64,000 nt of DNA. Origin: Neoechinorhynchus agilis. Taxonomy: Eukaryota > Animalia > Acanthocephala. This document shows, piece by piece, positions 5,300-49,191 of this stretch (positions are counted from its first letter, which is position 1; each line of letters starts with the position of its first letter). The notes under the pieces were generated by a model, which did no database searches, was not told the origin of the DNA, and saw only the letters and a list, made by a program, of their open reading frames with translations. The position numbers were made by a program, and so were the translations under genes. Where the stretch lies: NCBI GenBank assembly GCA_051530055.1, contig CM121342.1, forward strand, positions 11,609,480-11,673,479, given 5' to 3'.

Positions 5300-8200
5300 C
5301 TATAATGAAGAAATAAGGTTCTTAGCGACCGTATTCGAGAATACCGAAAGTCCTGTTATATGAGCGACTAGCTCCGTCATTCGAGCAAGAACGCTGATCC
5401 AATATATCGGTCTCAGACGATCAATCAACCTTGTAGGAAATAGCGTCTTTTCGTAATTCATACCAGAACATTTACAATACTTCTCGAAGTTGGACATTCG
5501 AACTTCTCGACATTTCGGGCACTGATGGTCTTGAGAAAAGTACTGAACCAGAAGATTATCAACGACGTCTATAAGGAATTGCTCAATGAAATTTACATCG
5601 TAAGGCCGGTGACATCGCAAACATAGCCAGAAATCTTTACGGCCGTCGTCTTCCTCGGTGATTGCACCTCCGTTTTCAATCAGGTTAAACGCACAGTCTC
5701 GAAATAGATCCACATTCAAAACAGACAAACATGCTCCATTGGAGAAAGTCTTCGTTTTTTGAAAAGGAATCAATAAAGTTTTATCAGTGTCGAGAAATGA
5801 ATTTAAAAGACTCCACTTCAGGTCCTCTAAAATCCCATTTGTGTGCCTTTGCGTTTCATTCAAACCAAGCGAAGCAAATGAATCGGCAAAATTGTTTACC
5901 TTTCAAGCACAAGATAACGCATCAATTCCACATGACTGATAATGTTCTTGTTTTCCGGGTATATTGCAAGAGAGAAAACACGGATTGCATTTCGTCCAAA
6001 ATGTATCCATTAACAAAAACAGATTTTCTGAAATTTGTCTAAAAATGCGTAAACTTTAACAAAAACTCGTTTCTATCTAAATCGATTAGTCTTCCAAATG
6101 AGCTCTTTTTATATACTACAATAAAAAAATATCCGTTGTTTAATTTTGCTGCACGAGATAATGATAAGTTTTATAAACGAGAACAAATTCGGTCAATAAA
6201 AAATTTCTTCGTCGTAATGTATCTTTCAAAAATCGAAATAGATTTGGCGACGTGTGTCCTAAGTTACTCGTAGAAGCCCATTTCAATAAAAAATAACAGA
6301 AATTCGTAATGGACGTGCAAAACAAATTACATATAAATCAGTTAATATATCGAGACTATTGCTTAAAATTATTGTTTAGAGGTCTTCACCCGGTAAATAA
6401 TTTTTTATTAAAGACGTTCTGCGAACCTCGTAAGGGGTTAATCATCAGTTTGTTAGTTATAAAAAGACGCTCAAAAACTGATGATGAACTCCTTACGAGA
6501 TTCGCAGAACGTTTTTTAATAAACTCTTTACCGTGTGCGAAGACTTCTAAATAATAATTCTCTAATCATATACAACCCGGTTCCTCCTCTCACATATCGA
6601 CATTTTGAAACTATCACTTTAGAATCATTTGTTTACTCTCTTAACTTGTACTGAAATTGTAAGATAATAAAATTGAAAGCACGAATTCTTTCAATTTTCG
6701 TCCAAGAATTTAAAAGACTTTCTCCGTACAGTAGACTTGAGGCACTACTAAGCTGGTATTAAAACCGACGTTGGCAACCCCTTTGCTTGAATCCCTGGAT
6801 GAAATCAAATGTCCGTATCCAAGATGTTTAAGAAGATCGTGCTCAAGATTGAATATTAGATCGCTTGATAGTTGGTCTACGGACAAAATGGCGCATAGAC
6901 ACCTTATGCATTCCAACGAAGGATTATCCCATGCGAAATACGAGTGCATAAATCTTGGATACACGTCCCGAGGAATATGTGATGTATCTATACTTCGTTC
7001 GGCCCATTTGCTCAGCATAACTGCGTTCCCATTCATTTCGATATTGATGATATTACGTATATTTGATAGGATTTTCGAACCAACTTCATCTGTCTCCATG
7101 TCTGGAAATACGGATGCGTTGACAATCTGAACAGATTTATCAATTTTCGTTACTTCACCAAGTTCCCTTAGAGCGAACTGTTCCGCAATAAAGACTACAT
7201 ATGACCCGATCAGATTAGTTACCTGTTTCCTCAGATCAGAATGGAGATGTCTTAGAAGAAAAAACTTGGCTTCCACGCGTTTCTCATTAAGATTCAACGG
7301 TTCAGTGTTCATTAGTCCGCAGTAGTTAAAGGGATCGACCCATAGAAGTGCATGCCAACACTTAAGCGGTCGGAGACGAGCGTAAGCAAATACTTGAACC
7401 TTTTCTTCAACATCGTCGCCCAGTTGAAGAGCAACTTTTGTGATGTATTGCGCATAATTTATAAGTGGTCCATAGGCTCCATGTTTTTTAAAATTCACGA
7501 TAACCTTCCAAACGTCAGCGTAAACTACAACTCCACCGAGAGACTCGATTTCGTTCAAAAGCAAAGACAGCATTTTCTTCATTGAAAGAATCACAGAGGA
7601 CGCTAGACAGGATTCGTACATGTGAGACGTGGGATTTATAAGCCAGCGGAGAAAATGAGTTAGAAGGGTATCGGCCATTTGATTCTTGAAATGCATGGCG
7701 TCGTTCATCCATGCACTTACGGTATTTTTTAAGATCCGTAACGATGAACATGACATCATAAAAGTATCACTAAAAGCGCCTGATGCGGATGGACCAAGGT
7801 TAGGAACTCCTGTTAGACCCACATCGTTTGAAACACCTGCAGCATTTTGATCTATGACTCCGTCGATTTCGTTCAAACGGCTAATGCCCAATAAAGCACA
7901 AGCAGCGAGGTTAATGAGTTCGAATTGAACACATGCTGAAGTGTACACTGAAGGTTGATTTACCATTGCTTCACACACGGCTGTAGGAGAGACGGGAATG
8001 TGATTGTAAACCATAGGAGAAGTTGAAGTTACATCGGTGTTGGTTGACCACCATAAAACATGACCGGTGGATTGAAGGTTCCTTGCGTAGAATACATCGC
8101 ATGCAAACGAAATCGCATCATCCTCGATGTTTCCTAATGGAATTTGGTAATAACGCGATTGCTCAATCTTGTACGATAAAGAGAAATTCGCTGATAGGTA

Positions 8201-11200
8201 TGAAGAAACAAAGTGGCGAGAAATGACAGTTAATCTCTTAAAGTTCCTAAAAATTAGCCGCAAACCCAATAGACAAATTGCCTCGAAATACAGCCAATTC
8301 CAGTCAATCGACAAACGGTCCGATTAACCATATTTGACTGTATGCTTAAAGCTCGTAAACAAAAATGCGGACATTCACATAACGCTTGACGTAAATCTTC
8401 ATTTCTCCTGTCGATATTGCTCTACCAATAATACTAAAAATTTAGTATTTTTATACAGACTGTGCGATTTCAAGCACCTCAGGGGAAAAAATTGAACCTT
8501 GTCCATTTTAGTAGATAATAAAAATGCAAAATTCTACCTAGATCTGAGGGGAGGGTTACATCTTTTTTTAAAGCACTTGTCAGAACTAATGTCAATGTCT
8601 AAGCTTCGTCAAATGATTATTTGAAATTTAAACGTATCAATTTGACGTTGATCGTATCCAAATTATTTTTAAAAACTTTAATTTCAATTACCGCCGTAAA
8701 CAATAGAGATTAACTGCACTTTAGAGAATCCTGCCACTCATCGCCTTTGAGTCGAGCATTATCATTAAAGGTTAGTCTCACGATTGGCGAATCATTAAGA
8801 CATGGAATTAATTGTCGCAGTTCATCGCTTAGAGCGGATGAATGTGTAACGATCATATGAGCAATTCTAAGATTACCATTTTCTTCAACACTTGAATTAA
8901 CAAAATCCATAATTGTAGTGTTCAGAAGACTATAAAGCTCCTCGGCTTGTTGAACCACGCGAACTTGAAATGTGTGATCCTCAGGTGGATACAGAGACTC
9001 ATCGACAGCAGCATTCTGAGTTCGTTTCCTTCGTTCTGCTAAGAAAATCTTTCTGAGATTAGGTAAACGATTCTCGCCTCTGTGATTGAGCACGAAGACC
9101 CGTGCTATCTTGCGCGATATTAAAACAACGGAGGCGAATGCAATTTCACGAACTCGTTTCCTCGAACGAAATCGTTTTCGGTAAAAGTAAATATAGACAG
9201 TCTCTGGAAGCACGTCCTCTGCTAAATACGTGAGTCGACTTTCAACTGGATCTTCTCTTATAATCTGATCTAGAGTGAGTGGCCCATTTCGGTTTGTGTC
9301 CATGGTGCACATTGTACCGGTTTCGATTATAAATCGAAGGATAGGAGAAGTCTGCAGTTCGTAAATGCCCAATACATCGCCCGAATTGCAAAGTTCAACT
9401 GTAATCTCATGATAATTTTCAATGAAAAACTTTTCCGGCACAATATATTCGTAGAGATATTGGGTACGGGCACCTCGAGGTAATATCTTTTGTGTTAGTT
9501 TGCAATAATCAACTTCCTCGTCCATTTTAGTTTTCCGATTTACGTAAAATTTACGATTTAAACGAACGGTATAAGAAAAATAATGACCATCTTCGTTCAT
9601 CGTTATAATGCGGGCAAATCCACGCGAAAGTGGAAAGATCTCAAGGATTTGAAGCGTGTCTGTGATTTGAGATTCCCTGATAAAATATCGAATATCATTG
9701 GCTTGCACGGTGTCGGCTTTCTTCTTATTCTTTAATCCTGGTTTTTTCGTCCTTGATCGACATGGCTCTTGTACTAGTTGTCTCCACATTTGCTTATAAA
9801 AACGAATATATTCAAGAAAAGATTGCCTTGAATGATTTAGGCGAATGCGATGAACCGGTCGAGTTTGTGCGGGGTTTGAATTCTGTTCAATTGCTTTAGC
9901 AGTTACTTCGTTCGGCGTTCGATTAACCTTCGGCACAGTTGCCACTGTAGGTACTTCCTTTTTCTCAACATTGAAAAAATCTTCAAGTCGCTGCTGTTTT
10001 GAAGTACTGAATTTTTCCATCAGCCTTTTTTGCAACCAGTCCGGGTAAGGCACACGAGGAAGTGGGTTGGATATGTTTTGAAACGAAGCAGGTATTGTGA
10101 TGAGTTTTTGAAGACATCCGTTAAAGCGGTCAATATAATAGTCCCAATCAATGTGATTACGAATGTCAAAATTACCAAGATCAGGAAGTTTAAGCCATTT
10201 ACGCAGAAAGTGCCGTTTAATAGCAGGTTCCGCCTGAAATATCGCGACAGGAATAGCACGATCAGCAATGGGTGCACCTTCAGGTCTTCTAGAAATAATA
10301 AAACGGCAAGTCAGACCTTTGTCCTTTATCATCTGCTCACCGAGAAATTCCGCTAAACGCTTAGCCGTCGAAATAGACGTTGACTTCTGCGACCCATAGT
10401 CACTCAATTGCCGAGACATACGTCTATTTTCAGCAATCAATTCAAACAACTCATCGTCACTTAATCCACGACCCTTGGCGTGTAAAATATCGAGCCAGTA
10501 ATTGGCTACTTTGGCCGCTGAGTGATAGCTCTGATCGAGAGTTTGACCGTTCAAGAAAGCCTCAAACACTGATGACTGGAATATTTTTATAAGTTCTAAT
10601 TCGCCGTTCCGCTTTACCTCGAATCCTTTCAATTCGGCAATCGTTCGGTCGAAATTGAAAACACAGTAACGTTTCTTAATCCTCTTTCCTTCTTCCTTCG
10701 AAGCTGGTAAAATCATCGCATGATAGGGACCGTCTACCTCGAAAAAGATTGAATTCTCGGATTTTATGACATATTGAATCCGCCTTCGTTCCAGTCCATC
10801 GGTATCATCATCTAGCACTAGCTCATGATATTGATCATTCGTAAAATAATCTTTTATTGGGACGTAATGGGACGAATTATATGAAGGTTTAAAAAAATCC
10901 AGATTTTGAATGCTATGACATTCGAGTTGAAGGGAAATTGTGAAAAAAAAACGTGACGAAATCTCTGTCAGTTTACCAAGATTCTTTTCCGTGCTGATTT
11001 GTAAATAGCAGACACAGAATCGAAGAGTAATTACACATAGATAACTTCATGAAAGAATAAAAAAAATCATTTCATTTGCAAATTTTAAGGAATACGAAGA
11101 AAAGGAGAGTGAATTTCAGCATTGAAATCCCTGCTACTCTGAACCATTTTGAGAAATGGTAAGTTTACGATTGTTCAAAAACTAAAACATTTGAAAATGT

Positions 11201-14200
11201 ATGCAAAACGCGAGAAACGCGTTCAAAACTGCGAATGACAAAAATATTGAACCAGAAAATCACGACTTATTTCGGCCACGTCTCTTTACGCCCTTTACAA
11301 GAAGATTAAGTATTGCACAAGGATACGAAACCTTAAAACTTCCGCTTTCGCCCATGTCATTGATTGTCTTTACAACAAAATTCGAAGGAAAGGACGATGG
11401 AAGCATGCACCATATACCATCGGTATCGAGTTCTAAGGGCATTCCAATTTGATCAACAAGGATCCTCGCTTTCGTTATAATCAAAGATCCCGTATAACAG
11501 ACAATACCGGCCATTTCGAGACTGTGCCACCTAGCTCCTTTTCTCATAACATAACCATAGAACGAATTCAGGATACATTTGTGGGCCATTTGAAGAGAAT
11601 CATAGAGCACAACCATGTTAGAGCAATACCTAGCGTGGTCGGAATCCTTCGAATGTTCTAACTCAGATTTCCATTTCTTATGTAAACTCTTAAACTCATA
11701 CCGGCGATCTCGGAATGCCCGAACAGTGTCAACATAGAATGAGTTTTCTCGCTGGCATATCACAGTCTCCTTTTTTTCCTCACGAACAAAATGTATCCTT
11801 TTATAAACCTTTTTGCTATAATCTGCTAAACGCTTCTTTTCCAGTGATGATCGTTGTTGAACTGGTAAAGCGAAATACGATCGGAGTGGCTGGTTTGCAG
11901 ATACTGGAAAACGTTCTGATTCCAGTTGAGCCTTCACTCGTTGTACTTCAACTCGTGTAACTGGCATGTACTCTGTACGCGACACCCATTCCATTGAACG
12001 TTTGCATCTTGCGTTAGGAGCATTGAAGGAACAAGTGGCGCAATCCATTCGAGTTACAATCGCAGAAGGTTGAAGGCGATTTGTAAGGATTATGTTCGGA
12101 TACATTGCGCCAACATCTACATGCAAATAATCTCTCGCTTTTTGTTAATAAATTAAAATAGCACTGCTCATTTTTTATTATAATTTTAAATTAGTTTCCT
12201 CGGAGGAAACGTTCCTGCAGAAAATAGGTGAAAATTCGTATGTTCGAGATTAGAAAATAAAGCGGCCTCAATATATTGTTTATTGAGATTATTTACGTAA
12301 GTGATATATGAATGGAAGTTCTTTGACAAAAGGATTATCTCTTAGTATAGACAATTTCTCAATGATTTCCTCGCTTACTTCTTTTAGATTTGTAACATTA
12401 CTGAGATCAACGCCTTCGGTTTCAATCGCTAGTTCCAATGTTCGATCAACCTTTTGAATAAGGTCCTGTATAGCTACGGGTGACGTCTTAAACTTTATCG
12501 GTATATCGCTTCTAAATACTCCAGACTCGAGAGCCTCAACACTCGCTCCTACATAGGTTTCCTGTTCAATGAGATGACCATCGTTTGTGTATCGGTCAAC
12601 TGGACTCGTCTGTCTATTAGGGAAAATCACATTTGCTTTGAACGCTTCAGCCATTAGAAGCCCCTCACATAATGTACTCGATCCGTTCCTGAGGACATCA
12701 TCAGGACCAAGAGGAATGATTGTACAAAGGGCAAAAATGAACGGATGAACGTATTTAGTATAGAGATAAAATGTCGCCACAGCGTCCGATACAGAATACG
12801 TACAGAGTAGTTGTGGATGCTCAGCGGCGTATTTACACATGAGTTCTGGATCTACTTCAACTGGATCGTATCTTAACTTCGCTTTTGTAACGGCCTTTAA
12901 TCCCTGGCTACCGATTGGTAGATAACTATCTCTTTTGACCCATTTCAGGCAATCCATATGAACAGCAGGACGGCATAAATAATCTTGGACTTGTCCTTGT
13001 TTTGAACTTTTCGCGAAACCAGTTTCGACAGTTAAATCGATCCCATGCTGAAGAGCTCGGGTTTCTATAAAAGGCCAATCAAATGAATCGCCGTTATAAG
13101 TAACAAAAATTAGCGGACGAACGCGTCCAATGTGGTCGAAAAAGTAATGCAAAACGGATTTTTCATCTGGTAGGTTGATAACTTTAAAATGACCCGGAAA
13201 TTCCTTTTTAGGAGTGTACTCAAAATCGCTTACGTCTTCACCGATAATTTCACGATTATTCACAAGAAACCCTAGTCCATCGTACATATAAGAAATCATC
13301 ATTATTTGATCGATACTAGCGTCCGGGAATTTAAGTGGCGATTTGGTAGTTTCTATATCAAAGGCAAAAACACCAGGATCTGGCTGCTGTAAAAGCAAAG
13401 GTTGCGGCGAAATAATGTAGCTTTTTTCGGAACTCAAATCAGTTGTAACACGACTAACTTCGTACCACAGGCCAGTGCATAAATTAAGATCAATGGCAGC
13501 TCGTGTTACAAATGGCACATCGTACTCACGAATATCAATCACATACTCAAGTGGCTCTCCAGACATTTTTAAAGATGAACTATTTTCAGTGCTACTCATA
13601 GCAGTCGATGTATCGCCCGAAATAAAGGAAGCAGTTCGAACCTGGTGTCGGTGGTTAATAGACCTCGATTTCAAGGCGAACGGCATCAACTCACGGCGAG
13701 CAGCGTTCATGTCATCATTGTTGAAAAAGCAGAGGCGAATACAAGAACGACGAAGACCAGTCAAATGATTATTGAGACTAAGATCGTCTTTCTCCACTAA
13801 AGAGATGGATGAAAGCTTGTCTGCATATTTGCGAGCCAATCGAGTCATTATTTCTCGACTAAACTCGTCTCGTGGAATCACATAAAAGTACGGTCGAACC
13901 AGTTGAACCACCTTAAACCGATTTGAATCGTTCGCTATGAAATACAAATTCAAAGCAGCCATAAATCGGTGATCTTCTTTATTCAGCACCTCAGTCATCT
14001 GCATATTGAACAGCCATCCAACACGAGATTCTCCTGCCGATGTGAACTCTTCAAATCCGTACAAGGAATCGACACGAACGTTTTCTTTGATTTTCAAAAG
14101 TTTACGTGTACTTGTAGCCTCAGACGAAATAGAAAGTGGTGCAGATTGAATAGCAAGGTCTGTAGCTTCCAAATCAATTGCAAACTCATTGTCTGCTCCG

Positions 14201-14223
14201 AAATGAGTGTCTTCATCGTCCAT
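5300..14223 (-). CDS. POLE: DNA polymerase epsilon catalytic subunit (multi-exon)
   Basis: Exonuclease motifs [26 protein letters not shown]. Polymerase motifs [42 protein letters not shown]-terminal Cys motifs CLRC and CPKC...CKC. ORFs 12289..14223, 11260..12126, 8710..10818, 6710..8314 and 5300..5863 are collinear. Confidence 0.97.
6366..6602. repeat. Family C palindromic element in a POLE intron: ~190-bp imperfect inverted repeat plus a one-sided tail, with an HHR-like core in each arm
   Basis: Left arm ttagaggtcttcacccggtaaa...gacgttctgcgaacctcgtaaggggttaatcatcagttt pairs with right arm aaactgatgatgaactccttacgagattcgcagaacgtt...gaagacttctaa. The tail cctcctctcacatatcgaca recurs inverted at 48386 and 23849. 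Confidence 0.8.
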
Positions 14224-16965: not shown

Positions 16966-17024
16966 AGGATATTGCACCCCTTCCTCGGCTTTTTGCATAA
17001 GACCACGGCATAAAACAACACCGG

Positions 17025-17096
17025 TTTCTTACATCAGAGAAGTAATTGAATCACTTAGACTCGGATGCGATACAATCACTTCTCTGATGTAGGAGA
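17025..17096. repeat. Stem-loop with 24-nt arms built from family D sequence
   Basis: tttcttacatcagagaagtaattg pairs with caatcacttctctgatgtaggaga (mostly Watson-Crick, some G-U). cagagaagtaattgaatcacttagact matches family D at ~22876 and ~63746. Confidence 0.7.
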
Positions 17097-18143
17097 TCGA
17101 TTTCGACTCAGGTCCCTGTATTTTGTTCTGCTGCGTTCCTCAGCGGCGGTTGCTGCTCCCTGGTTTTAATCGTGGTGAATTTATGTTGCTGGCCGCGAGC
17201 GTGTCCACGAACGTGGCGTCCCAGAGAAGGCATTTTCCTTCCCGCCACGGTAATAGTGTGACACCACCCGGTCTACGGCCATCGAGTCCGCAAAGATTGC
17301 TCGGTTCTAGGATGTTGGGCGCATTCACAGTATTCAGGGCACGACTAAGAATTGCGTTCACTTCGCCGTGTCGTGAATACCTTCCGCCTCGTTACGGACA
17401 GACGATATCATGGTGTCCCGATGGTTCAACGGTCGCTCCGCAACGGCAGCGATGGGATGTGTACATCGGTACCCCAAGTCTAAGGGACACTGCAATCCTT
17501 ACTGTCTCGTCGGGGAGAAGGATACCCACAGAAGCGATTGGGATAGCATTGAGCCAAGCACCCGATTCTCTTGTAGAGACTGGCGCCAATCGAGTTCGGT
17601 TCACCAGGTCACGGGAATTTGAAATTGGAGAGTTATGAATTTTCGCTACCAGGGGTGAGTCCCAAACTGATTGTTTGCAACCATCGACCGCTACCTGCTC
17701 GCTACCTGAATCTCTACACCAAAGATTAAGCACCTTCACGAAATCTTTATCCAAAGTGCAATTCTCGTCAAGAACGGATTGATCAGTTTTGCGGCTTGCT
17801 TCATACGGCCCCAAATTAGCTGGAAAAAATATCGGATGCTTTTCAGATACCCAAACCGCCGGACGACACAGGCAACGAAGCTTGATCCCAGGCCTCGTCC
17901 AGCAGTTGAGAATTTAAAATTCTCTCGAGAGAGAGGCTTTCACCGTCTCGTCTAATTTTGCCAGCTTATTCTCATGTCTAAAAAGGTGCTGTGCACACCT
18001 TATACAGCAGTTTTGGAATAAAGAGGATGCTCTTGATCAGGAGTTTATGCCGGAAAAATTAAAGGAATTTATTAAATCAAATATCTCGGCGATACACGCT
18101 TCTAATGAAAGTAGTAAATTAATCGACCCGGGTCTTACTTCCT

Positions 18144-21100
18144 AAGGTTATTTCCCCTGAACATCGGGTTATCTAAATTCAAAAAAGAAGGATGACGATG
18201 CTTTATCCTCAATATCAACATATTTCTTTGTTTGGCGATAAGAAATAGAGATTAATTTATTGATTGCCTTTCACACAATATTTCGTCCGCCGGGCAGGAA
18301 TTTTCAAGGTTGTTTCGCTAGAACATCGGGTAATCTAAATTCAAAAAGAAATGACCACGATCCTTTATCCTCAATATCAAGATATTTCTTTGTTTGGCGA
18401 TACGAAATCGAGATTAATTTATTGATTGCCTTTCACACAATATTTCGACCGCCTGGTCGGTATTTTCAAGGTTGTTTCGCTAGACCATCGGGTAATCTAA
18501 ATTCAAAAAGGAATGACGACGATCCTTTGTCCTCAATATCAAGATATTCCTTTGTACGGTGATGAGAATAGAAATTAATTTATTGATCGCTTTTCACACA
18601 ATATTTCGTCCGCCTGGTCGGAATTTTTAAAAAAAAAACCACACAACCCCACCAGGTTGTTTCGCCAGGCCATCGGGTAATCTAAATTCAAAAAGGAATG
18701 ACGACGGTGCCTTATCCTCAATATCAAGATATTTCTATGTTTGGTGATGAGAAATAGAGATTAATTAATTGATTGTCTTTCACACATTATTTCGTCCGTC
18801 TCGTCAGACTTCTTAACATCGTTTCGCCGGACCATCGGGTAATCTAAATTAAAAAAGGAATGACGACGATGCTTTATCCTCAATATCAAGATATTTCTTT
18901 GTTTGGTGATGAGAATCGAGATTAATTTATTGATTGCCTTTCACACAATATTTCGTCTGCCTGGTCGGAATTTTTATGGTTGTTTCTCTAGACCATCGGG
19001 TAATCTAAATTCAAAAAAATGACGAGATCCTTTATCCTCAATATCAAGATATTTCTTTGTTTGGTGATGAGAATAGAGATTAATTTATTGATTGCCTTTC
19101 ACACATTATTTCGTCCGTCTCGTCAGACTTCTTCAGGTTTCTTTCGCCGGACCATCGGGTAATCTAAATTCAAAAAAGAAGGATGACGATGCTTTATCCT
19201 CAATATCAACATATTTCTTTGTTTGGTGATGAGAATAGAGATTAATTTATTGACTGCCTTTCACACATTATTTCGTCCGTCTCGTCAGACTTCTTCAGGT
19301 TGTTTCGCCATACCATCGGGTAATCTAAATTCAAAAAGGAATGACGACGATGCTTTATCTTCAATATCAAGATATTTCTTTGTTTGGTGATGAGAATAGA
19401 GATTAATTTATTGATTGCCTTTCACACATTATTTCGTCCGTCTCGTCAGACTTCTTCAGGTTTCTTTCGCCGGACCATCGGGTAATCTAAATTCAAAAAA
19501 GAAGGATGACGATGCTTTATCCTCAATATCAACATATTTCTTTGTTTGGTGATGAGAATAGAGATTAATTTATTGACTGCCTTTCACACATTATTTCGTC
19601 CGTCTCGTCAGACTTCTTCAGGTTGTTTCGCCATACCATCGGGTAATCTAAATTCAAAAAGGAATGACGACGATGCTTTATCCTCAATATCAAGATATTT
19701 CTTTGTTTGGTGATGAGAATAGAGATTAATTCATTGATTGCCTTTCACACATTATTTCGTCCGTCTCGTCGGACTTCTTAAGTTTTTTCGCCATACCATC
19801 GGGTAATCTAAATTCAAAAAGGAATGACGACGATGCTTTATCCTCAATATCAAGATATTTCTTTGTTTGGTGATGAGAATAGAGATTAATTTATTGATTG
19901 CCTTTCACACATTATTTCGTCCGTCTCGTCAGACTTCTTCAGGTTTCTTTCGCCAGACCATCGGGTAATCTAAATTCAAAAAGGAATGACGACGATGCTT
20001 TATCCTCAATATCAAGATATTTCTTTGTTTGGTGATGAGAATAGAGATTAATTTATTGATTGCCTTTCACACATTATTTCGTCCGTCTCGTCAGACTTCT
20101 TCAGGTTTCTTTCGCCAGACCATCGGGTAATCTAAATTCAAAAAGGAATGACGACGATGCTTTATCCTCAATATCAAGATATTTCTTTGTTTGGTGATGA
20201 GAATAGAGATTAATTTATTGATTGCCTTTCACACATTATTTCGTCCGTTTCGTCGGACTTCTTAAGGTTTTTTCGCCATACCATCAAGCAATCAAATTTT
20301 CGAAAAGGAATGACGACGTTGCTTTATCCTCAATATCAAGAAATTTCTTTGTTTGGTGATGAGAATAGAGATTAATTTATTGATTGCCTTTCACACATTA
20401 TTTCGTCCGTCTCGTCAGACTTCTTCAGGTTTCTTTCGCCAGACCATCGGGTAATCTAAATTCAAAAAGGAATGACGACGATGCTTTATCTTCAATATCA
20501 AGATATTTCTTTGTTTGGTGATGAGAATAGAGATTAATTTATTGATTGCCTTTCACACATTATTTCGTCCGTCTCGTCAGACTTCTTCAGGTTGTTTCGC
20601 CAGACCATCGGTCAATCAAATTTCAAAGAGGAATGACGACGGTGCTTTATCCTCAATAATCAAGATATTTCTATGTTTATTGATGAGAAATAGAGATTAA
20701 TTTATTGATTGCCTTTCACACATTATTTCGTCCGTTTCGTCGGACTTCTTAAGGTTTTTTCGCCATACCATCAAGCAATCAAATTTTCGAAAAGGAATGA
20801 CGACGTTGCTTTATCCTCAATATCAAGAAATTTCTTTGTTTGGTGATGAGAATAGAGATTAATTCATTGATTGCCTTTCACACATTATTTCGTCCGTCTC
20901 GTCGGACTTCTTAAGGTTTCTTTCGCCAGACCATCGGGTAATCTAAATTCAAAAAGGAATGACGACGATGCTTTATCCTCAATATCAAGATATTTCTTTG
21001 TTTGGTGATGAGAATAGAGATTAATTTATTGATTGCCTTTCACACATTATTTCGTCCGTCTCGTCAGACTTCTTCAGGTTTCTTTCGCCAGACCATCGGG

Positions 21101-22450
21101 TAATCTAAATTCAAAAAGGAATGACGACGATGCTTTATCCTCAATATCAAGATATTTCTTTGTTTGGTGATGAGAATAGAGTTTAATTTATTGATTGCCT
21201 TTCACACAATATTTCGTCCGAGGAATTTTCAAGGTTGTTTCGCCAGACCATCGGTTAATCAAATTTCAAAGAGGAATGACGACGGTGCTTTATCCTCAAT
21301 AATCAAGATATTTCTATGTTTATTGATGAGAAATAGAGATTAATTTATTGATTGCCTTTCACACATTATTTCGTCCGTTTCGTCGGACTTCTTAAGGTTT
21401 TTTCGCCATACCATCAAGCAATCAAATTTTCGAAAAGGAATGACGACGTTGCTTTATCCTCAATATCAAGAAATTTCTTTGTTTGGTGATGAGAATAGAG
21501 ATTAATTCATTGATTGCCTTTCACACATTATTTCGTCCGTCTCGTCAGACTTCTTCAGGTTTCTTTCGCCAGACCATCGGGTAATCTAAATTCAAAAAGA
21601 AATGACGACGATCCTTTATCCTCAATATCAAGATATTTCTTTGTTTGGCGATACGAAATCGAGATTAATTTATTGATTGCCTTTCACACAATATTTCGTC
21701 CGCCTGGTCGGTATTTTCAAGGTTGTTTCGCTAGACCATCGGGTAATCTAAATTCAAAAAGGAATGACGACGATCCTTTGTCCTCAATATCAAGATATTC
21801 CTTTGTACGGTGATGAGAATAGAAATTAATTTATTGATCGCTTTTCACACAATATTTCGTCCGCCTGGTCGGAATTTTTAAGGTTGTTTCGCCAGGCCAT
21901 CGGGTAATCTAAATTCAAAAAGGAATGACGACGGTGCTTTATCCTCAATAATCAAGATATTTCTATGTTTATTGATGAGAAATAGAGATTAATTTACTGA
22001 TTGCCTTTCACACATTATTTCGTCCGTTTCGTCAGACTTCTTAAGGTTGTTTCGCCAGACCATCGGGTAATCAAAATTCAAAAAGGAATGACGACGGTGC
22101 TTTATCCTCAATATCAAGATATTTCTATGTTTGGTGATGAGAAATAGAGATTAATTCATTGATTGTCTTTCACACATTATTTCGTCCATCTCGTCGGACT
22201 TCTTAAGGTTTTTTCGCCATACCATCAAGTAATAAAAATTGTAAAAATAATGAAGACGGTGCTTTATCCTCAATAATCAAAATATTTCTTTGTTTGGCGA
22301 TAAGAAATCGAGATTGATTTATTGATTGCCTTTCACACAATATTTCGTCTGCCTGGTCGGAATTTTCAAGGTTGTTTCGCTAGACCATCGATAATCAAGT
22401 TTCAAAAAGGAATGACGATGATGCTTTATCCTCAATACCAACATATTTTT
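18144..22450. repeat. Tandem array of ~26 copies of a 162-bp unit, each with an HHR-like motif on the - strand
   Basis: atagagatta recurs at 19879, 20041 and 20203 (period 162). I counted 26 tttcgtc(c/t)g anchor positions between 18281 and 22343. The - strand of the commonest unit reads CTGAAGA A GTCTG ACGAGA CGGAC GAAA TAAT GTG. Confidence 0.95.
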
Positions 22451-22518
22451 TCACACTCAATCTGCGGATACCGCCAGATAAACGAAATTGAGTTCTTCTT
22501 GGATGCATTTTAGATAGA

Positions 22519-22550
22519 CTGAAGAAGACCCACGCGGAGGCTGAAAATTA
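22519..22550 (+). ncRNA. Degenerate hammerhead-like motif
   Basis: CTGAAGA A GACCCACGCGGAGGCT GAA AATT A. Both core halves and the palindromic stem III are present, but stem II is poorly paired. A sibling CTGAAGAAGTCCCACGC lies on the - strand at 28969-28985. Confidence 0.45.
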
Positions 22551-22849
22551 TCAAATAAATCAACTATTATAATTCGCTATAAAAATGTATTGTGATGAAC
22601 TCCCACGTGTGTCAGAAAAAGTTTATCCGGTTTTAATTTTTGTGAGAATACCTTTTGACGACTTGATTTGGCAGCAAGAAAACTAAAGTTCTCGTTAATG
22701 CAAATTGATTGGCACCTCTTTGTGCAGAGAAATTGATCCAAAAATTTGCACAATAACACAAATATTTTAATTCTTTTTAAAGTCTGGCTTGTCGGTTACA
22801 TTTTCTCTCTCTAAGTGTTGTAAACATTTCTTTTGATAATTTTTGTTTA

Positions 22850-23010
22850 TGGGCACACAGCCAACCGCTTTGGGTCAGGGAAGTGATTGAATCACTTAGA
22901 CTTTGGACCATACAGCAATGAGTTTGTACATCCTCTTGATCTTCGGATACTTCGCGAGAAGGCAGGATTCATCAGTGAGTTTCCTTCTCCCTTCAACACA
23001 ATTTCGCCCT
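22850..23010. repeat. Dispersed repeat family D, partial copy
   Basis: gggcacacagccaaccg...gaagtgattgaatcacttagac...gagtttgtacatcc...catcagtgagtttcc aligns by eye with 63721-63880 and partly with 47385-47520. Confidence 0.75.
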
Positions 23011-23099
23011 TTTGTTTATGAGTAATATGGGATAATGGATAAATAAGGTATTTTAATAAAATGCTTATTCAACAAGACCTCCGAAGGCTTTTAATGCCA

Positions 23100-23530
23100 T
23101 GGACAGTCTTTTCTTATCTAAAGTATTAATGTTTTTCCAAGTGCCTCAAAACCTAATTTATACAATTTAATATCTCGTAGAATCATTAAGTTCTATCTTC
23201 TTAAACGCCTTCGATTCCTTGGATTATCATCCAAAGATATTAAGTACTATTATATGTCCGCCATCCTACAATCTATTCAAATAATTAATACATTTCACAA
23301 GAGATGCGCTCTAATCTTCGCCACCGAACTCCTGCTCCTAGAAAAACACCTCTATCTAATGTTTCAAAAGCACTCAAAGCGCCTTCATTCTCTTCCGCCT
23401 CTTCAATTTCTACCGCAAATTTCTCCTTTTACTCATACTTACAAAACTCGTCGCCCAATCTTCCCAAATGCTCAATCGTCTAAATGCGAATTTATTCAAA
23501 GGAAAGAACCGAAAATTACAACTTAACCGA
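23100..23530 (+). mobile_element. Degenerate LINE (CR1/L2/Rex-like) ORF2 3' tail
   Basis: FYLLKRLRFLGLSSKDIKYYYMSAI resembles the post-RT RLYFLRRL..FG.....L..FY pattern. HSKRLHSLPP and TRRPIFP resemble the terminal region of those ORF2s. Confidence 0.45.
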
Positions 23531-23848
23531 CCAAAGTCAACTTACCTAAGGTACAAGGTTCGGTGACTTATGCTTATTCTTCTTTTAAATAAAACGATTT
23601 TATATATTATTCTTTCAATTAAATCAAAAACTTTTAAGACGCATTGGGCACTTTATGGACTAAAACATAATCTACAGACCATCTAAATCAATTATTCTAA
23701 AGCAATGTGCTCTTTTTGTCATGGGCCTTTCGCCTGAGAACCGATTTTTAACAAAAGTAAGCACTCACCATTTGTCAAAAGTGTATTCAGACTGGAAAAA
23801 AAGACCCAAAGATTCTAAATAAATTTAAAACACTTGTTTTTTAAAAAT

Positions 23849-23975
23849 GCCGATATGTGAGGAATGGGAATGTGATTGGAGTTATTGTTCAGGTCTAGGC
23901 TCGGTAAATGATTATTAATTTAAGACGTTCTGCGAACCTCGTCGGGTTCATCATCAGTTTGTTTTATAAATTACG
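23849..23975. repeat. Family C half copy with an HHR-like core on the - strand at 23924-23957
   Basis: gccgatatgtgagg tail plus gacgttctgcgaacctcgtcgggttcatcatcagttt. The - strand reads CTGATGA T GAACC CGACGA GGTTC GCAGA ACGT C. Confidence 0.75.
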
Positions 23976-25109
23976 AATAGATTGTGAATAAATTGTTTTT
24001 AACTAAATTCTTTTAACAACAAATGCAACTTTTATTAATTCATTAGGACAGGCAAGAACTTTTCAAGTATCCTGCAGATATCCTAAAGGAAACGAAGGGC
24101 GTGGCATCAATTTAAAATGAATCGAACAGTATATCGAATATGGAACAATTTTTATCCATTGAAGTTTTACAGTCGATTTTCGATCTTACACGAACTTGAA
24201 ATTTATCACACGATTACGATACACAATAAACGTGATTGCAGCTCTCATTCATTGATGAGGGGATGATCACTCCAACACCGAACTCTAACGACCTTTCCAA
24301 TGATATTTTACGAATGAATGTGATGACATGTTTGAGCCTTAAGGATAATAACAAACTGCATATTTTCATTAGCAATAACGGTTATGTATTTCTCATTGTT
24401 GGAACTCTCATTCGAATGTTTTTTTATGTCAAACCAAAATGAATATTTAAATGACTTAAACATAAATACCATACATCCAAATCGTTTATTTTCCACCGAA
24501 AAAGCGATAACATTAGAGATTTAATAAGGACATTAAGTAATATATTAGCTGTGCATGAATATTTCGAAGATCGCAAAAAAAGCAATGTTTAGAATACAAA
24601 AATAGTATTCAGTTGCCATTTACGAGAGTAAAACCGACTATCGAGAACAAGAGATTTGATCAAAATTGTTTTAATGGCTCTATAGATCACTATGACGACC
24701 GAGTTCGCAAATCTACGTGGTATTGAAGGAATCGTCAATAGACCCCGAAATGGTTTTGCCATCATAAAATATATTCGATATTCTATTTTAAACATAATCG
24801 GACAATGAGCGATACTCATATTACATTCATAGATCGAGATTGCTTGACTCATTAAGTCCGATCCAAATTTTACTTTGGTGTTGTTTTATTGATTTCAATG
24901 GCGGTTTGTTAAAAATCGATTGTAGTGTAATTGTCTGATTTGTGAAAAAATATTCGACAACATAAATAGCAGCGTTTTAGAGCAAGGTTTGTGGATTTCT
25001 GGGAGAAGGTCGACTAGTCCTTTGAATTTTGCTTTTACAGTTTGCCACTTGGATACAAGCCGCCCACTCCGTTCACTCACTCACATTTCTCACACACTGA
25101 GTCGCTCAC

Positions 25110-28560: not shown

Positions 28561-28772
28561 TTTGTTGATAGGAGAGATAAATGAAATTAAGATTTTATTG
28601 GATATTTCGATCCACTATCTCGGATCTTCTTCAGCGATTGCTTGTAAGTTTTTAAATATGTGCTAGCTAACACATATTTAAAAGCTTACAAGCAATCGAT
28701 GAAGAAGGTCTGAGATAGTGGATCGAAATATCCAATAAAATCTTAATTTCATTTATCTCTCCTATCAACAAA
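28561..28772. repeat. Near-perfect 212-bp palindrome (~103-bp arms)
   Basis: tttgttgataggagag...aaatatgtg pairs with cacatattt...ctctcctatcaacaaa, with only four substitutions seen. A 12-bp direct repeat acattcaggtat flanks it at 28526-28537 and 28772-28783. Confidence 0.92.
28595..28640 (-). ncRNA. Type I short-stem-III hammerhead ribozyme candidate
   Basis: The - strand reads caatcg CTGAAGA A GATCCG AGATAG TGGATC GAA ATAT C caat. Both conserved core halves are present, stem II has 5 WC + 1 GU pairs, and the AUC site would cleave between 28601 and 28600. Stem I is weak. Confidence 0.7.
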
Positions 28773-29531: not shown

Positions 29532-31324
29532 CTATCGTCTTGGAGGAACTTCGACTTTCAACATTCCATCTCCATCCAAATGAGCTTTCAATTCGTCCAC
29601 GTTGACCCAATCGGGCAATTTATATTTTCTGACATACTCCGCACTGGCCAGATCTCGAGATTGATGAGAAGTTTCATTCATTGTTTGCGGATGTTGATAA
29701 GATGAGCTAGTTCTCATAGTGGACTCTGCGTTCTTTTTTGCCTTAACTTCGAGCATATTGTCATTGACTCTAACGCTCACTTCAGTGGGTAAGTATCCTT
29801 TAAGGTCGTATGACAATTTCAGTGGTTCTCGTGGTCCACTTTTGTATCGCTCTTGAAGTACCACAGGGGGCGAAGATGTTGGTATGGTATGAAGAGTACT
29901 CCTTCCTACTGCTACTCCCTGTGCTCCATCAGGCAAATCAATAGACAAAATACCGTCGGAACTAAAGCAACTTCTTATTGCGGCAGTGTCGATGCCACAG
30001 GGCAGCTCGATTTCTCGTCTAAATTCGCGATACGTTTTACCGGAACTATCCTGATCAGATCGAAGTGCATGAATGGTCATTAGATTGTTATCGTCCACCT
30101 TTATTGAAATATTTTCTGGCTTGTACTCCCTTAGGTCAAACTCGTATTTCTTTTGCGAAGCTGGAAATGTCTGAGTAGGTGGCTGCGGAGTAAACGAACT
30201 TGTTTGAGGACTGTAGCCAGGTTGAATCGCGGTATGAGAAGAAGATCCATGAAAGTCTCCGATTGCACGGGTTCTATCCGAAGACCATTTAGCTTTGTGA
30301 TCGATTTTCATAAGCTCAAAGAAGAAAAATACGACAAAGTAAATCAAACTCTTAAAATTGCGATTCACAAATAGTAATTTTTCAAATTAGACGCTCGCAA
30401 TACTACAACCAATAAAAAGACAACTGACAATGAATCTAGTTTTGTTAGGAAACAAATGTGACGCCCATTCATTATATTTACTCCCTGAGTTTGACAGCAT
30501 TGCATTTCGTGATATTTTCAATTGTCTATTCATTATCGGCGATAGCTGTAAATGTAGAATAAGTTTAGAAGAAAGCCGCACCCGTAAGCCAAATGCGTGT
30601 ATCGATCTCAAATTTAACCCGCTCATCATACGGACTACTAGTGGTGACATAACCAGCGGAGGATCCATGTCCGATTGATCTGAATTTTTCTAATATTACT
30701 GGCGCCTCAACAACCAGCGACCCATCTGATTGCTGATAAGACGTAACATATCGGTTATCAACAAAATCAGGTAGTGTTAGTTCACGATTGAACTGCTTTG
30801 TTTCGGTCGCTGAACCTTGTACTATTCTCTTTTCACCTTTAACCACGAGAATTCGTCCATCGGTTCTTACAGAAAGTTCGTTCGGTTTAAAGTCATTAAT
30901 GTCAAACTGAATTTTGTAGCGCCTAGAACCGTCCATGTTTTCTTCAACGAATGTCTTATAGTTTGAACCTGCTCGATGTCCAGAAGTGGGAAACCTCGAC
31001 GAAGATGGGAAATCAAGAGAATGAAAATCTGAGCTAGGGAACTCCGGGAAATCAAGACTCATTCTAGGTCGATCCCCAATACTCGTATTTCTGCCAACTC
31101 GCGATTCACGGAAAAACCGTTCACGCCATTGTCGACACTCTTCTTCAAAGTCGCGCATTCTTTGACTAATTTTATCTTCGAATCCACCAGCGAAATCAGT
31201 TCTGCTAACAATAAGTAAGGTTCTTTGCACAGTATAGCTTCGAAACAAACCTTCGAGTGTCGATGCCGCCTGCTTGGTTAGTTGAAGGGTTCACTGAGAC
31301 GGGAATTGGTACTCGAGTGTCCAT
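29532..31324 (-). CDS. Small heat-shock protein with three alpha-crystallin domains (p40/major egg antigen-like); single-gene model probable
   Basis: ACD1 KIQFDINDFKPNELSV...SDGSLVVEAP; ACD2 KYEFDLREYKPENISI...SSDGILSIDLP; ACD3 KLSYDLKGYLPTEVSV...DGDGMLKVEVP. Start MDTRVPIPV at 31324 followed by a short intron. Confidence 0.8.
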
Positions 31325-34300
31325 TGACGCTATGGCGAGTGTCTGAAATGTCTACGTTGGTTTATATTTGAGAGCATAAGTCAGACAAGGGTTAATAGCA
31401 GGGAATTCTGTTATTCATGTGAGTAGTTCTCCCGATCGTATTTGTGGCGTGTTCCGGCGTTCACGTGTTGGCAAAATGAGACGGTTGGGAAATGCTTGAC
31501 GACAAGCGCCGCCATAAGTGTTCGAAGAATGATAGTGCTGCTGCTGGTGGTAGAGCGATGTAGAGTGCAGAAAAAAGAGGGCAGGCGACGGTGGCAGTGC
31601 AGTAGGCAAGATACAAGAAATAGCAAACGGAGGAGAAAAGCGAAAGGAATATCAACCTTTTGACATTATCACTTGAGAAACTCGTTTGGCGATGATTGTC
31701 CGGTTGGATAGGGAAAGTGAATGTCAAAACATAAACGGCATTCACAAAAAAGAAGAAGATTGCGCTCATGAGTGAACGGGATACACGAGAATGAAAGTCG
31801 TGTGCGTTTCTCTTAAAGAAAACCCGAATCCGTTGTATGCGTGTGAAAAGTGCTCATCCACACGTTTAGACGAGAATATGCGACAAACGTACAGCATAAC
31901 AACCCCGTCGAACACACCTAAAACTCTCTTATTTACCCACTCACGTTGCTTTTATGGCCACTAGGCTTAAACGTAAACATTTCGAGACGAAGAATGGGTT
32001 TCTTTGCTTAGAGAAAACCAATGATACATTGAGCAATTTTACACGCACCGAAACACGCACTGAAAATAGAGAAGATTCGTAGGTTGCTAGTGCCGCCGCC
32101 GCCGGCAGCACATGAGTTCCGCTGACGAATCAGATGAGGAAATGTGGTGCCGAAAACGACGAAACTCATTGTTTTTTTTCGCATATCAGACTCCACATTA
32201 TGCGCAAGAAATTCAAATGAGTCAAAGCTCAAAACGTGGATTTTCTTTTTATTCAGTTCCAAATAAAGTGATTACTCAACTTTGGCTTATGGGTGCGCAT
32301 TGTGATCAATGGTGTAGAAATATTCCTGCTTTGAAATCTTAAAAAAATACTTAAATATTATTTGAGCAGTTCGTGTTTTTTTCGTGCAAATGCTTAAAAT
32401 TAGTTGGCGATTAAAAGTGAACTACGAGGGTTGGGGTGCCATTTGGGGGTCAGGGGATTCCGCTCTTTGGACCGCCGAATAGGGAATGCGAGCACAGGAG
32501 TAAGATTTTCCTCAGAGGACAAACGTTACTTTTTAGCCAGCTAACGCCGCCAGCAGTATTATGGACATGACTATCAGCGAGCTAAATTATGATCGATGCT
32601 ATGACGAGTATAGTTAATTTTATGAGAATAAACTTTAATCCTAGCAAAAAGCATGAGACAACAAATTTGTGGCTTGCGTAATAAACGAGTTGGCATCTTT
32701 GCAGTATTAGTAGATCCTTTCAATATGTGGTTTTTGTTCTAAGGCCCTAAAAAGTAGCTAAGAACAAAATGGCATTCGTATATGCCTACTAGGTGATGGA
32801 ATGCATTAGCAAAAAATATGGAGAACTGATGTGTGCTTATTGAGATTCCCGCAAATTCACTACCGTAATGCAAAAAGATTGTCGGTTTCAAACAATTTAA
32901 CTCGTTTATGGTCCACCGGCCGTAACTTTTTCATAGTTCGTTCGGATTTCATTCGAAAACTGGGATGTACAGAGCTTCTAATTGCGTTCCTAACATACTC
33001 TTTATCGGTTAATATAACGAGATTGTACTGACTTTCAGCTATTGAGTCTAAATGGCCAACTCAAACTTTAGCTCTATGGGGAATTATAAATTAGAGCTTC
33101 CCAGTTGTATTTTACACCTCGCTGCAAATGAATTGACAAGAGAATAATGTGAAACTTAATTTTATAGTTGATAGACGAGTGATAAAATATCAATAGAAAA
33201 ATGTATTCGAATGAGTTTAGATTGACAAAATTATCTATAAGGCTAAATTAGAGCAAAAAACTCTTATACATTACCAATCACTAGATGATATACAAAGATT
33301 CTGGTAGATGAATGTGGTTGCTAAAAACCTGAAAAATTCAATATTAGAGAAATCAATGATCGTTGTATTAAGATTTTTGCGCTCTCTTATGGGATCTCGA
33401 AACTTCCGTCCAGATCTTAAAACAACCACTGTTTTTTAATTGAGAACAATATTGACTTAGTGTATTAAACAACTACCAATCACCTTCGGTTAATCTCAAT
33501 CGAAAGATATACTTATCGCGTCCCCATTTCTTGATTGTATCGAAGAATATTGTCTATGGTTGCAAGCAATATTCAGATCGGTATTGCCGGTATGCAGACT
33601 TTTTCCAGTGTTCCATCCAAGCGTTCGTTGCCCGCATTAATGAAAGTATGTGATAGCAAATCACATCTCTGTCAGTTATGGGTGAATTACAATGATCAAA
33701 CCCAGTCTCCTTATAGATTCCATAAAAACCAGGTATTCGTAATGTCAAGAACCGTTTAGGCATCAAATGTTCTTAGGAACTCTGCTTCGGTTATTAATCT
33801 TAATACTGATTTTAATTGTACGTTGGCGAATCCTGTCCCCGGTGTTGCCGTTATTCATTTATTTGTGAAATATTTCGCAAGGTTTTCCTTGCCTCTTCAG
33901 TCGCTATTGTTTGTAAGTGCATGATATTTTGATCTTGGACTCGGCATAAGGAAAGAAGACTGGACAATTCGAAATTTTAATGTTTTGAATGCCCACTCAA
34001 TTCTTTAGACATCGTCAATCCTTTTAACATACAGTGGAACGTCGATTATCCGGCTCACAATGATGTCTTACTCAACTTCTGTTGCTATAAGGGAATCAGA
34101 AGTCTTGTAGAGAAAAAGCGAACCTATGCAATTGTATAGAGGTCAAATTAAGTGTTTTATTTTCAACTGATACATTTTAAAGGAGAGAAGCTTCAATTTT
34201 GCGGGCGGTGGTGATTGCACGTTTTGTACTTTATTATTGTAAAACCTAGAAAAAATGTTTTTGTTAAAAAAAACAAAAAAAATAATTTATTTTCATCAAT

Positions 34301-45289: not shown

Positions 45290-45900
45290 TTATTCGCCGT
45301 CCTCGTCTTCAATTGTCGTCCGAATGCTTGCAGTGTTGCCTCCCAAAACGGCGATGTTGATACTTTGAACCACGGTTGTAACCTGAAGGCGTGGCTTCAG
45401 ATCCCTCAGGAGTTGAAGAGCCTCGCTACCAAGAGATAAGTAGGTCTCAACCCCAAAAGGCACAAACACGTGGGCCCAGGTTAAATCGAGGTATTTCGCC
45501 GTTTTCCATCCTTCCGCAGTACTCGCTGCACCTCCAGCTTGAATCACCGAGAACTTGAGTTTGCTGGCCGCGAGTTTATCGACACAAGTGGCGTTCCAGA
45601 GGAGGCATTTATCCTCCTGCCACGGAAATGCGGTCACCCCATCAGGTCTACGCTCGGCGTCCCTACAGAGGTTGGCAGGTTCCAAAATATTGGGGGTATT
45701 TACCGCGTAACAAGTGCCCGGCTCAGCACCATGTTAATTTCGGCATGTCTTGCGAATCTACCGGCTGATTTTCTACAGATGAGACCATGACGTCCCGACG
45801 AATCCATATTTGCACCGTAGCGGCAACGGTGGGGAATGGCACACCGGTAGTCCTAGTCTCATTGAAACTTCGACCCTTACTGCCCCGTCGAAGAGAAGAG
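45290..45900 (-). mobile_element. CRE-like retrotransposon 3' fragment
   Basis: RRPDGVTAFPWQEDKCLLWNATCVDKLA...FVPFGVETY...INIAVLGGNTAS restriction-like endonuclease. Degenerate zinc-knuckle region upstream. Confidence 0.82.
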
Positions 45901-48686: not shown

Positions 48687-49028
48687 CAACCAACTTCTAA
48701 ACAATAATTCAAATTAAATAAACACTTGAGAAAAGCGTCCGATTTCACAATTTTTACAACTCAATGCTAACCTCGGAAGAGAATTTACCGGAAGAAATAA
48801 CAAAACGAAAGTCTAACCGATAAAAAATACCAATTCTTTTCAGCATAAACAAAAAACATATCAAGAGAAAATCCATATCGGGATTGCAAATTTTGATTTA
48901 TTGTGAACATAATCACCCGTCTAAAAATCACTTTATTGTCGAAAGAGAAAAACCTCACCCTATCAGCTAATGTTTTAAATTTTTTCATTCGTACTTGAAT
49001 GTTATTTTTCGTTAACGTATCCATTGAT

Positions 49029-49191
49029 ATTATTCTGGTCATAATAATCCCGGTAATAGCACATTTGATTTTGATTTATTGGAAATATTTCGCGAGGTGA
49101 CCTCGCCTCATCAGTCATTGTTTGTAAGTTATTAAATATTCGAGTTCGTGAACTCGGATATTATTACCGGGATTATTATCACCAAAATAAT
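49029..49191. repeat. Inverted-repeat element with an HHR on the - strand at 49083-49114
   Basis: 30-bp termini attattctggtcataataatcccggtaata / tattaccgggattattatcaccaaaataat. The - strand reads CTGATGA G GCGAGG TCA CCTCGC GAA ATAT T. Confidence 0.8.

Follow-up and report, generated by a model that had tools for sequence, protein, structure and literature searches.

Layout and setting of the satellite array

We analysed a 64,000-nt stretch of the genome of the acanthocephalan Neoechinorhynchus agilis (contig CM121342.1, positions 11,609,480 to 11,673,479; hereafter the window), which holds a satellite array whose units carry, on the - strand, sequences resembling the core of the hammerhead ribozyme. 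The explanation that we favour, with a probability of about 0.6, is that this array is a relic satellite, which would derive from a retroelement module combining a minimal hammerhead ribozyme (min-HHR) with an AAUAAA signal and would now behave as ordinary satellite DNA. The array and the two units used below as representatives (numbered u1 to u26) have the following features, all on the - strand:

18144..22448: tandem array of 26 units of ~162 bp (Tandem Repeats Finder (TRF), unit slicing and alignment, identity matrix)
18631-18654 (approximate): 24-nt G/T-rich insertion, UGGUGGGGUUGUGUGG and then a U run, at the u23/u24 boundary
19950..20111: representative type A unit u15, identical to u9 (slicing, identity matrix, per-unit table)
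20098..20104: CUGAAGA box (C3-A9) of u15, with the unpaired A next to it at 20097 (direct sequence reading)
20081..20096: helix II hairpin of u15, GUCUG (20096-20092), loop ACGAGA, CGGAC (20085-20081) (per-unit table)
20072..20080: G12-A13-A14-A15.1 (20080-20077) of u15, then U-A-A-U-G, with an A at 20074 where U16.1 is required
20052..20057: AAUAAA of u15, 19 nt past the GAAA box (per-unit table)
18316..18477: representative type B unit u25, with UUGAAAA at 18469-18463, a possible U3-A8 covariant core

TRF called a repeat of period 162 in two parts, 18144-18627 and 18653-22448, with 88-90% matches. The call is split because of the 24-nt insertion, which also destroys the box of u24. Cutting at the conserved anchor CGAAATAWTGTGTGAAA yielded 26 units; both approaches confirmed the 26-unit tandem satellite of 162 bp described in an earlier reading of the same DNA (the original prediction), which had claimed a retrozyme-like array of tandem hammerheads. 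The satellite has a G+C content of ~36% and comprises three unit types (A, A' and B), with B at both edges of the array and A in its centre.

The array lies between genes: a G-alpha gene on the same (-) strand (26680->25113) has its stop 2.66 kb upstream of the array's start, and ~330 bp past the array's end comes a 5'-truncated fragment similar to long interspersed nuclear elements (LINE-like; 17123-17814), beyond which lies the POLE gene. The coding density of the window is eukaryotic, with DNA polymerase epsilon exons, EF-hand, HSP20 and DEAD-box genes as well as LINE-like fragments. No further copies of the satellite occur elsewhere within the 64 kb, none was found in JGI metagenome contigs scanned with two patterns, and neither an exact look-up of the satellite open reading frame (ORF) nor a protein search with it gave any match. 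There is no target-site duplication flanking the array, the flanks sharing only two AT-rich 8-mers. We rejected a coding repeat (162 bp would make 54 codons), as the - strand contains stops in all frames and the + strand ORFs do not exceed 100 amino acids and have no homologues. A tRNA or short interspersed nuclear element origin was also rejected, ARAGORN giving no match in 17000-24500.

Unit types and their core defects

A hammerhead needs G12-A13-A14, an A15.1-U16.1 pair and a base other than G at position 17 (H17; Hertel numbering, classical mutagenesis). Ten of the 26 units (u6, 9, 12, 13, 15, 16 and 18-21) form type A and read CTGAAGA-A-GTCTG-ACGAGA-CGGAC-GAAA on the - strand. In the eight type A' units (u2, 3, 7, 10, 11, 14, 17 and 23) a T stands at the G5 position; the box is CTTAAGA in six of them, and in u17 (ACTTAAGA) and u23 (GTTAAGA) C3 is changed as well. 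Eight more units (u1, 4, 5, 8, 22 and 24-26) form type B, with CTTGAAAA-TTCCG-ACCAGG-CGGAC, or CUUGAAAA-UUCCG-ACCAGG-CGGAC as RNA. The per-unit table reproduces exactly the counts given originally (10 intact CUGAAGA boxes, 8 with G5 changed to U and 8 with a decayed left core).

Helix II of u15 is 5 bp long, with G10.1-C11.1 and a single U.G among its pairs. GUCUG/CGGAC is found in all A units and in the A' units u3 and u23, and GUCCG/CGGAC in the six other A' units. The predicted alternation of U.G and C-G in this stem, with pairing kept, is thus present (GTCTG/CGGAC and GTCCG/CGGAC in the DNA), as a change on one side only. Helix II pairs with an ensemble probability of 0.27-0.66 in A units, compared with about 1.0 in A' units. 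All 26 units have the GAAA box; the sequence after GAA is ATAAT in 18/18 A and A' units and ATATT in 8/8 B units, and an AAUAAA at +19 nt from the box is kept in 20 of the 26.

Not a single unit (0/26) is complete in cis for all core positions. In the 18 A and A' units, the AUAAU-G after GAA creates an A15.1.A16.1 mismatch, and an alternative register, with A15.1-U16.1 closed over a UAA loop, places a G at position 17. The A' units have lost G5 on top of this site defect. The B units keep the site, AUAU-U|GUGU, and have no CUGANGA. When five of them are read one base rightward, UUGAAAA takes the U3-A8 core form, a variant documented in min-HHRs of Penelope-like elements (PLEs) from Schistosoma (PMC4209133). 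In this register the unpaired base after the core is missing and a U.C mismatch sits at the base of helix II, as exemplified by u25 (helix II UACCG/CGGUC; site GAA-AUAU-U|GUGU, G12 at 18446 and U17 at 18439). The U3-A8 reading of the B units is only tentative because none of the solo modules found in the window (see below) has that core.

The helices flanking the core are also reduced. Helix I has at most 2 bp in the array (G-C, U-A), which a bulge extends to 4 bp in the ACAAC units; when trimers were scanned exhaustively, no site allowed A units more than 2 contiguous bp, and there is no loop 1. The units contain no helix III hairpin. Other hammerhead topologies (discontinuous, in trans, or using any substrate site within the unit) gave at most 2+2 bp for A units and were discarded, as was a type III arrangement in which an upstream hairpin would close helix I and which, examined by eye, is weakly workable in a single solo and fails for the array. 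Every core position comes together in just two pairings, an A enzyme acting on a neighbouring B site, and B-B with the U3-A8 core. Both would involve very weak helices, helix III having 3-4 A-U pairs and helix I 2 bp. As judged from the sequence, self-cleavage today is unlikely, and so is the production of 162-nt circles.

One could nevertheless imagine a split-hammerhead satellite, in which the A units would provide the enzyme half, still intact, next to a dead site, and the B units a cleavable AUAU-U site, with or without the U3-A8 covariant core. Double-hammerhead cuts would then be made only at u5/u6, u8/u9, u21/u22, u4-u5 and u24-u26, and the products would be defined multi-unit RNAs, not 162-nt monomers. 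More broadly, the min-HHR with its AAUAAA might serve acanthocephalan retroelements in general to form 3' ends, and would operate with almost no helix I. We consider this proposal highly improbable.

Related modules elsewhere in the window

A descriptor made of CUGANGA, 0-1 nt, a stem with 5 or more bp and GAAA matched five times outside the array, against 0.023 expected by chance (Markov-1 random sequence, 2 x 59.5 kb). Each of the five has an AUAU or AAUU palindrome after GAA, a non-G base and AAUAAA, and under a stricter set of features (one unpaired base after A9, G10.1-C11.1, 4-nt palindrome, non-G 17) all five remained against 0.003 expected. Relaxed searches yielded further copies, and a covariance model, R1, built on four solo modules, added those at 23912-23965(-), 22511-22562(+), 28591-28642(-) and 61091-61139(+). 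The window holds nine solo modules (-28634, +28699, -33900, -49114, -49900, +50355, -23912, +61091 and +22519), distributed as follows:

22511..22562, + strand: inverted weaker module, CUGAAGA-A-...-GAAA-AUU-A|UCAAAUAAAUC (R1 19.6 bits, E 0.034)
28561-28772, -/+ strands: palindrome of two head-to-head modules with 106-nt arms, 95% complementary, no spacer
49829-49976 and 50279-50430, -/+ strands: head-to-head inverted pair of a second family, ~150-nt arms, 91-93% identity, 302 nt between
49020-49180, - strand: ~140-nt element with an 18-bp terminal inverted repeat, containing the module at 49114, CUGAUGA-G-GCGAGG..CCUCGC
33855-33908, - strand: solo module homologous to the 49114 module over ~65 nt, helix II GCAAGG/CCUUGC
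23912-23965 (-) and 61091-61139 (+): further related family, CUGAUGA-U-GAACC..GGUUC (R1 E 0.006 and 0.43)

The sequence of helix II varies among the solo families yet it stays paired (GAGAC/GUCUC, GCGAGG/CCUCGC, GCAAGG/CCUUGC, GAUCCG/UGGAUC); between the modules at 33855-33908 and 49114 this involves a compensatory G-C to A-U change. The sites are AUAU-U/C or AAUU-C/A, and AAUAAA follows the putative cleavage site after 2-25 nt in every module family (e.g., 20052-20057 and 50389-50394). In the palindrome, the -28634 module reads CUGAAGA-A-GAUCCG..UGGAUC-GAA-AUAU-C|CAAUAAAA, and its +28699 copy has C3 changed to A. The second inverted pair (49829-50430) reads CUGAAGA-G-GAGAC..GUCUC-GAA-AAUU-C|GAUCAAAUAAAU. 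The ends of the 49020-49180 element, AUAAUAAUCCCGGUAAUA and UAUUACCGGGAUUAUUAU, form its inverted repeat; the element has a predicted fold of -43.4 kcal/mol (z = -5.9 versus shuffles) and could be similar to a miniature inverted-repeat transposable element, or a small structured RNA with a hammerhead core. In the 23912/61091 family, GCAGAAC or GCAAAAC replaces GAAA and is followed by AAUAAU or AAUAAA; this family appears to represent the module in a more degenerate state. The module at 22511-22562, with a degenerate helix II, directly adjoins the array at its upstream edge (5' on the - strand), head to head as in the other inverted pairs; beyond the core, its similarity to the satellite unit is not significant (score 31, null 22 +/- 4, maximum 39).

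Core and poly(A) signal are coupled in all module families, with almost no helix I. A long hairpin (49590-49775; 77-nt arms, 92% complementary, 32-nt loop) adjoins the second inverted pair and produced spurious sub-threshold matches to many microRNA-precursor models.

These modules bear on the possibility that the array is an ordinary satellite resembling half a hammerhead by chance. Its A-rich sequence favours GAAA and GAAGA strings, it contains no full hammerhead, Rfam does not recognise it, and some chance matches are to be expected given the many windows screened in the original reading. By chance, however, only ~6e-5 matches would be expected in one 162-bp unit with both strands counted, and independent solos of the same 64 kb share with it the unpaired base that follows A9, the G10.1-C11.1 pair and the downstream CAAUAAAU, which makes chance a very unlikely explanation.

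They also bear on a different role for the module. It could be a conserved 3'-end cassette of retroelements whose job is not self-cleavage but, for instance, recognition by the reverse transcriptase (RT) or AAUAAA-dependent 3'-end formation, with a core that would be vestigial or kept for another reason, as in the 'HHR_core' of Naiad PLEs; the satellite would then be an amplified copy of the cassette. This would fit the constant presence of AAUAAA 2-25 nt downstream and the lack of helix I, as read from the sequence, in all module families. It would also fit the Naiads, whose cuganga...gaaa cores match no hammerhead stem descriptor and which dominate an acanthocephalan genome (PMC8557442). In contrast, eleven nucleotides of the core are conserved together with the unpaired base, G10.1-C11.1, the palindrome and the non-G 17, despite differing helices II; this is hard to understand without hammerhead chemistry, and we found no direct evidence for an alternative function. 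We regard the cassette as a possible but unlikely explanation.

Is the array active?

A search of the whole window with Rfam cmscan at the gathering score detected no hammerhead or other ribozyme family. This result mainly excludes canonical type I hammerheads and not the min-HHR class, since the solo modules were missed too. Linear monomer RNAs fold no better than shuffled sequences (z = +1.81 for the - strand and +0.95 for the + strand), nor do circular ones (z from -0.45 to +1.94; four units, both strands).

An active retrozyme-like array would be transcribed into - strand multimers, which dimer hammerheads would cut once per unit into 162-nt monomers that are then circularised. Several characteristics speak for it: a unit of 162 bp with ~36% G+C is within the range of animal retrozymes of the non-LTR (non-long terminal repeat) kind (PMC7229834), ten units have a perfect CUGAAGA, helix II and GAAA, dimer-dependent hammerheads almost without helix III are known (PMC4209133, PMC7229834), and, by reasoning, the A-enzyme/B-substrate or B-B pairings keep all core positions. 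Against this, no unit has the full core in cis, helix I does not exceed 2 bp, no Rfam hammerhead appears even at E<=10 in 350-nt dimers, and both linear and circular monomers fold no better than shuffles whereas retrozyme circles are 'highly self-paired'. The core is, moreover, the most variable segment of the unit, the AAUAAA present in 20/26 units would disfavour long RNA polymerase II multimers, and intact published min-HHRs are already poor cleavers in vitro. Activity of this type is, in our opinion, quite improbable.

Comparison with known hammerhead systems

The min-HHRs of PLEs are marked by an unpaired base that separates position 9 from 10.1, a conserved G10.1-C11.1 pair and a palindromic 15.2-16.2 without loop 3; they act as dimers, and most are solo, others forming pairs whose two members, 100-700 bp from each other, lie on opposite strands (Cervera & de la Pena 2014, PMC4209133). 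Their helix I has 4-5 bp (2 bp only in Drosophila virilis) and their helix II 6-8 bp, and in vitro their cleavage is poor even if they are intact; hammerheads that depend on dimers and nearly lack helix III have been described both there and among retrozymes (PMC4209133, PMC7229834). The A units and the solos share with them CUGANGA, the unpaired nucleotide between A9 and G10.1, G10.1-C11.1 and GAAA, as do the A' units apart from G5->U; the B units differ by the U.C at the helix base and, in the U3 register, the lack of a bulge. Loop 3 is likewise missing, so that helix III can only form between two copies through the 15.2-16.2 palindrome, which is present in B units (AUAU) and all solos (AUAU/AAUU) and absent in the 18 A/A' units (AUAA). 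Further resemblances are the many solo copies, the head-to-head pairs a few hundred bp apart, and a sequence highly variable across families in which helix II is kept paired. Nevertheless, helix I is here 1-2 bp instead of the published 4-5 and helix II 5-6 instead of 6-8; our motif occupies a 162-bp satellite, while that of PLEs lies in their pseudo-long terminal repeats ~3 kb apart; no PLE ORF is nearby, and every array unit has a core defect. Overall, the module class matches, in sequence, the PLE-type minimal hammerhead architecture and not canonical type I.

Animal non-LTR retrozymes are repeats of 150-450 bp with G+C below 50% and 'highly self-paired' RNA circles (Cervera & de la Pena 2020, PMC7229834). 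Like them, including newt satellite 2 and Schistosoma Sm-alpha, the array is organised head-to-tail with units in the 150-450 bp range, low G+C and one motif per unit on one strand; some retrozyme families have a dimer-dependent helix III, and retrozymes, too, coexist with PLE-type hammerheads in the same genome. Unlike the array, they have canonical type I hammerheads with a 6-bp helix I and a loop 1/loop 2 contact, neither of which we found, as well as a helix III of 1-2 bp capped by a small loop, also not found, and their RNAs are highly self-paired, which the satellite monomers are not. Size and G+C therefore agree with the retrozyme-like nature proposed in the original prediction, but the poorly self-paired monomer RNA and the missing target-site duplication do not. 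Similarly, the proposed hammerhead array holds for its left core, helix II and GAAA, which are real, non-random (5 matches versus 0.023) and recurrent in the window, and for descent from a hammerhead-bearing repeat; it fails as regards a canonical type I ribozyme like those of newt, Schistosoma or retrozymes, given the negative Rfam result, a helix I of at most 2 bp, the lack of a helix III hairpin and the 18 units with a bad site.

In Naiad PLEs, cuganga and gaaa are separated by a 7-17 nt spacer (Craig et al. 2021, PMC8557442). Compared by description only, their 'HHR_core' resembles our modules in the cuganga...gaaa near the 3' end of the element that fits no stem descriptor, and differs in that the window has no Naiad ORF. 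Both hammerhead PLEs and Naiads with only the 'HHR_core' are abundant in another acanthocephalan, P. laevis, and Naiads dominate an acanthocephalan genome (PMC8557442).

Probable origin and decay of the array

The array has been amplified at the DNA level. Near-identical units are often not adjacent in the identity matrix (u6/u10/u13, 98-99%; u7/u11, 96%; u4/u24, 95%; u5/u25, 98%), and two non-adjacent pairs, u18/u20 and u9/u15, are identical. That most units are closest to a non-adjacent one points to unequal crossing-over of blocks and not to a single insertion of rolling-circle cDNA. In the unit alignment, the most variable columns are the 5' strand of helix I, the CUGANGA box and the 5' arm and loop of helix II, while GAAA and the next 40 nt are near-invariant. 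If purifying selection had acted on a ribozyme core, the reverse would be expected of the core segment, which is the most variable one.

The defects of the unit types complement each other: the left core is retained, with AUAA-U, in A and A' units, and AUAU-U, without CUGANGA, in B units. Together with the solo sequences, this suggests that the simplest ancestor combined the left half of A with the right half of B into a full min-HHR, and we infer that each lineage later lost a different essential base. Since the core, helix II and GAAA are non-random and the module recurs in the window, descent from a hammerhead-bearing repeat is the best reading.

The relic-satellite explanation can be detailed as follows. 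The ancestor of the monomer would have been a short 3'-terminal module of a hammerhead-bearing retroelement, of the PLE kind or a non-autonomous retrozyme-like derivative. Such a module would have had CUGANGA, one unpaired base, a helix II of 5-6 bp closed by G10.1-C11.1 and GAAA, followed by a 4-nt palindrome (forming helix III only between two copies), a non-G 17 and a nearby AAUAAA. A tandem-plus-inverted insertion may have seeded a few units, which would have diverged into the three types, each with a different essential position lost, before growth at the DNA level via unequal crossing-over of multi-unit blocks. Today the array would be an ordinary satellite and probably inactive; if its - strand is transcribed, most units should not self-cleave. 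RNA-seq has been published for N. agilis (PMC12690905).

Several points weigh against this explanation. Even at E<=10, Rfam cmscan found no hammerhead or other ribozyme family in 5 kb covering the array, in 350-nt A-A and B-B dimers or in the solo region. The satellite units get only 11 bits (E about 2) from the R1 model, which is noise level; family-specific sequence dominates this model. Helix I is limited to 1-2 bp in the solos also (by eye, with bulges considered). The intact ancestral unit is a parsimony reconstruction from one satellite locus. Finally, no PLE reading frame (RT or GIY-YIG) lies beside the array or the solos, the nearby fragments being LINE-like; a PLE origin is still probable, most published min-HHR motifs being solo as well.

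Other features of the window

The four LINE-like fragments (17123-17814, 41946-42473, 45290-45685 and 55760-57201) have in common a C-terminal '...RPDGVT.FPW.EGK.LLWD.TC.D.LA.S' motif and matched no Pfam family in the single scan made. The gene for the DNA polymerase epsilon catalytic subunit (5300-14223, - strand) has few, very long exons, and its best database relatives are 38-45% identical, which indicates a fast-evolving lineage. Two small heat-shock protein genes adjoin each other on the - strand (29532-30368 and 30565-31248), the first with two alpha-crystallin domains (HSP20 matched twice). TRF also detected a 27-bp tandem repeat with 2.2 copies at 58196-58255.

Implications

If the finding is confirmed, Acanthocephala would join the animals whose hammerhead-bearing repeats became satellite DNA, and the array would be a clear case in which a short tandem repeat was seeded by a minimal hammerhead of the PLE type instead of a canonical type I ribozyme. 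For annotation, what counts in practice is that Rfam models overlook this whole class. The minimal-hammerhead modules are dense in the window, about one per 7 kb, all coupled to AAUAAA and nearly all without helix I, and this density and coupling bear on the role of min-HHRs. The array also illustrates a mode of decay, in which unit lineages lose different essential nucleotides while block duplication at the DNA level still expands them.

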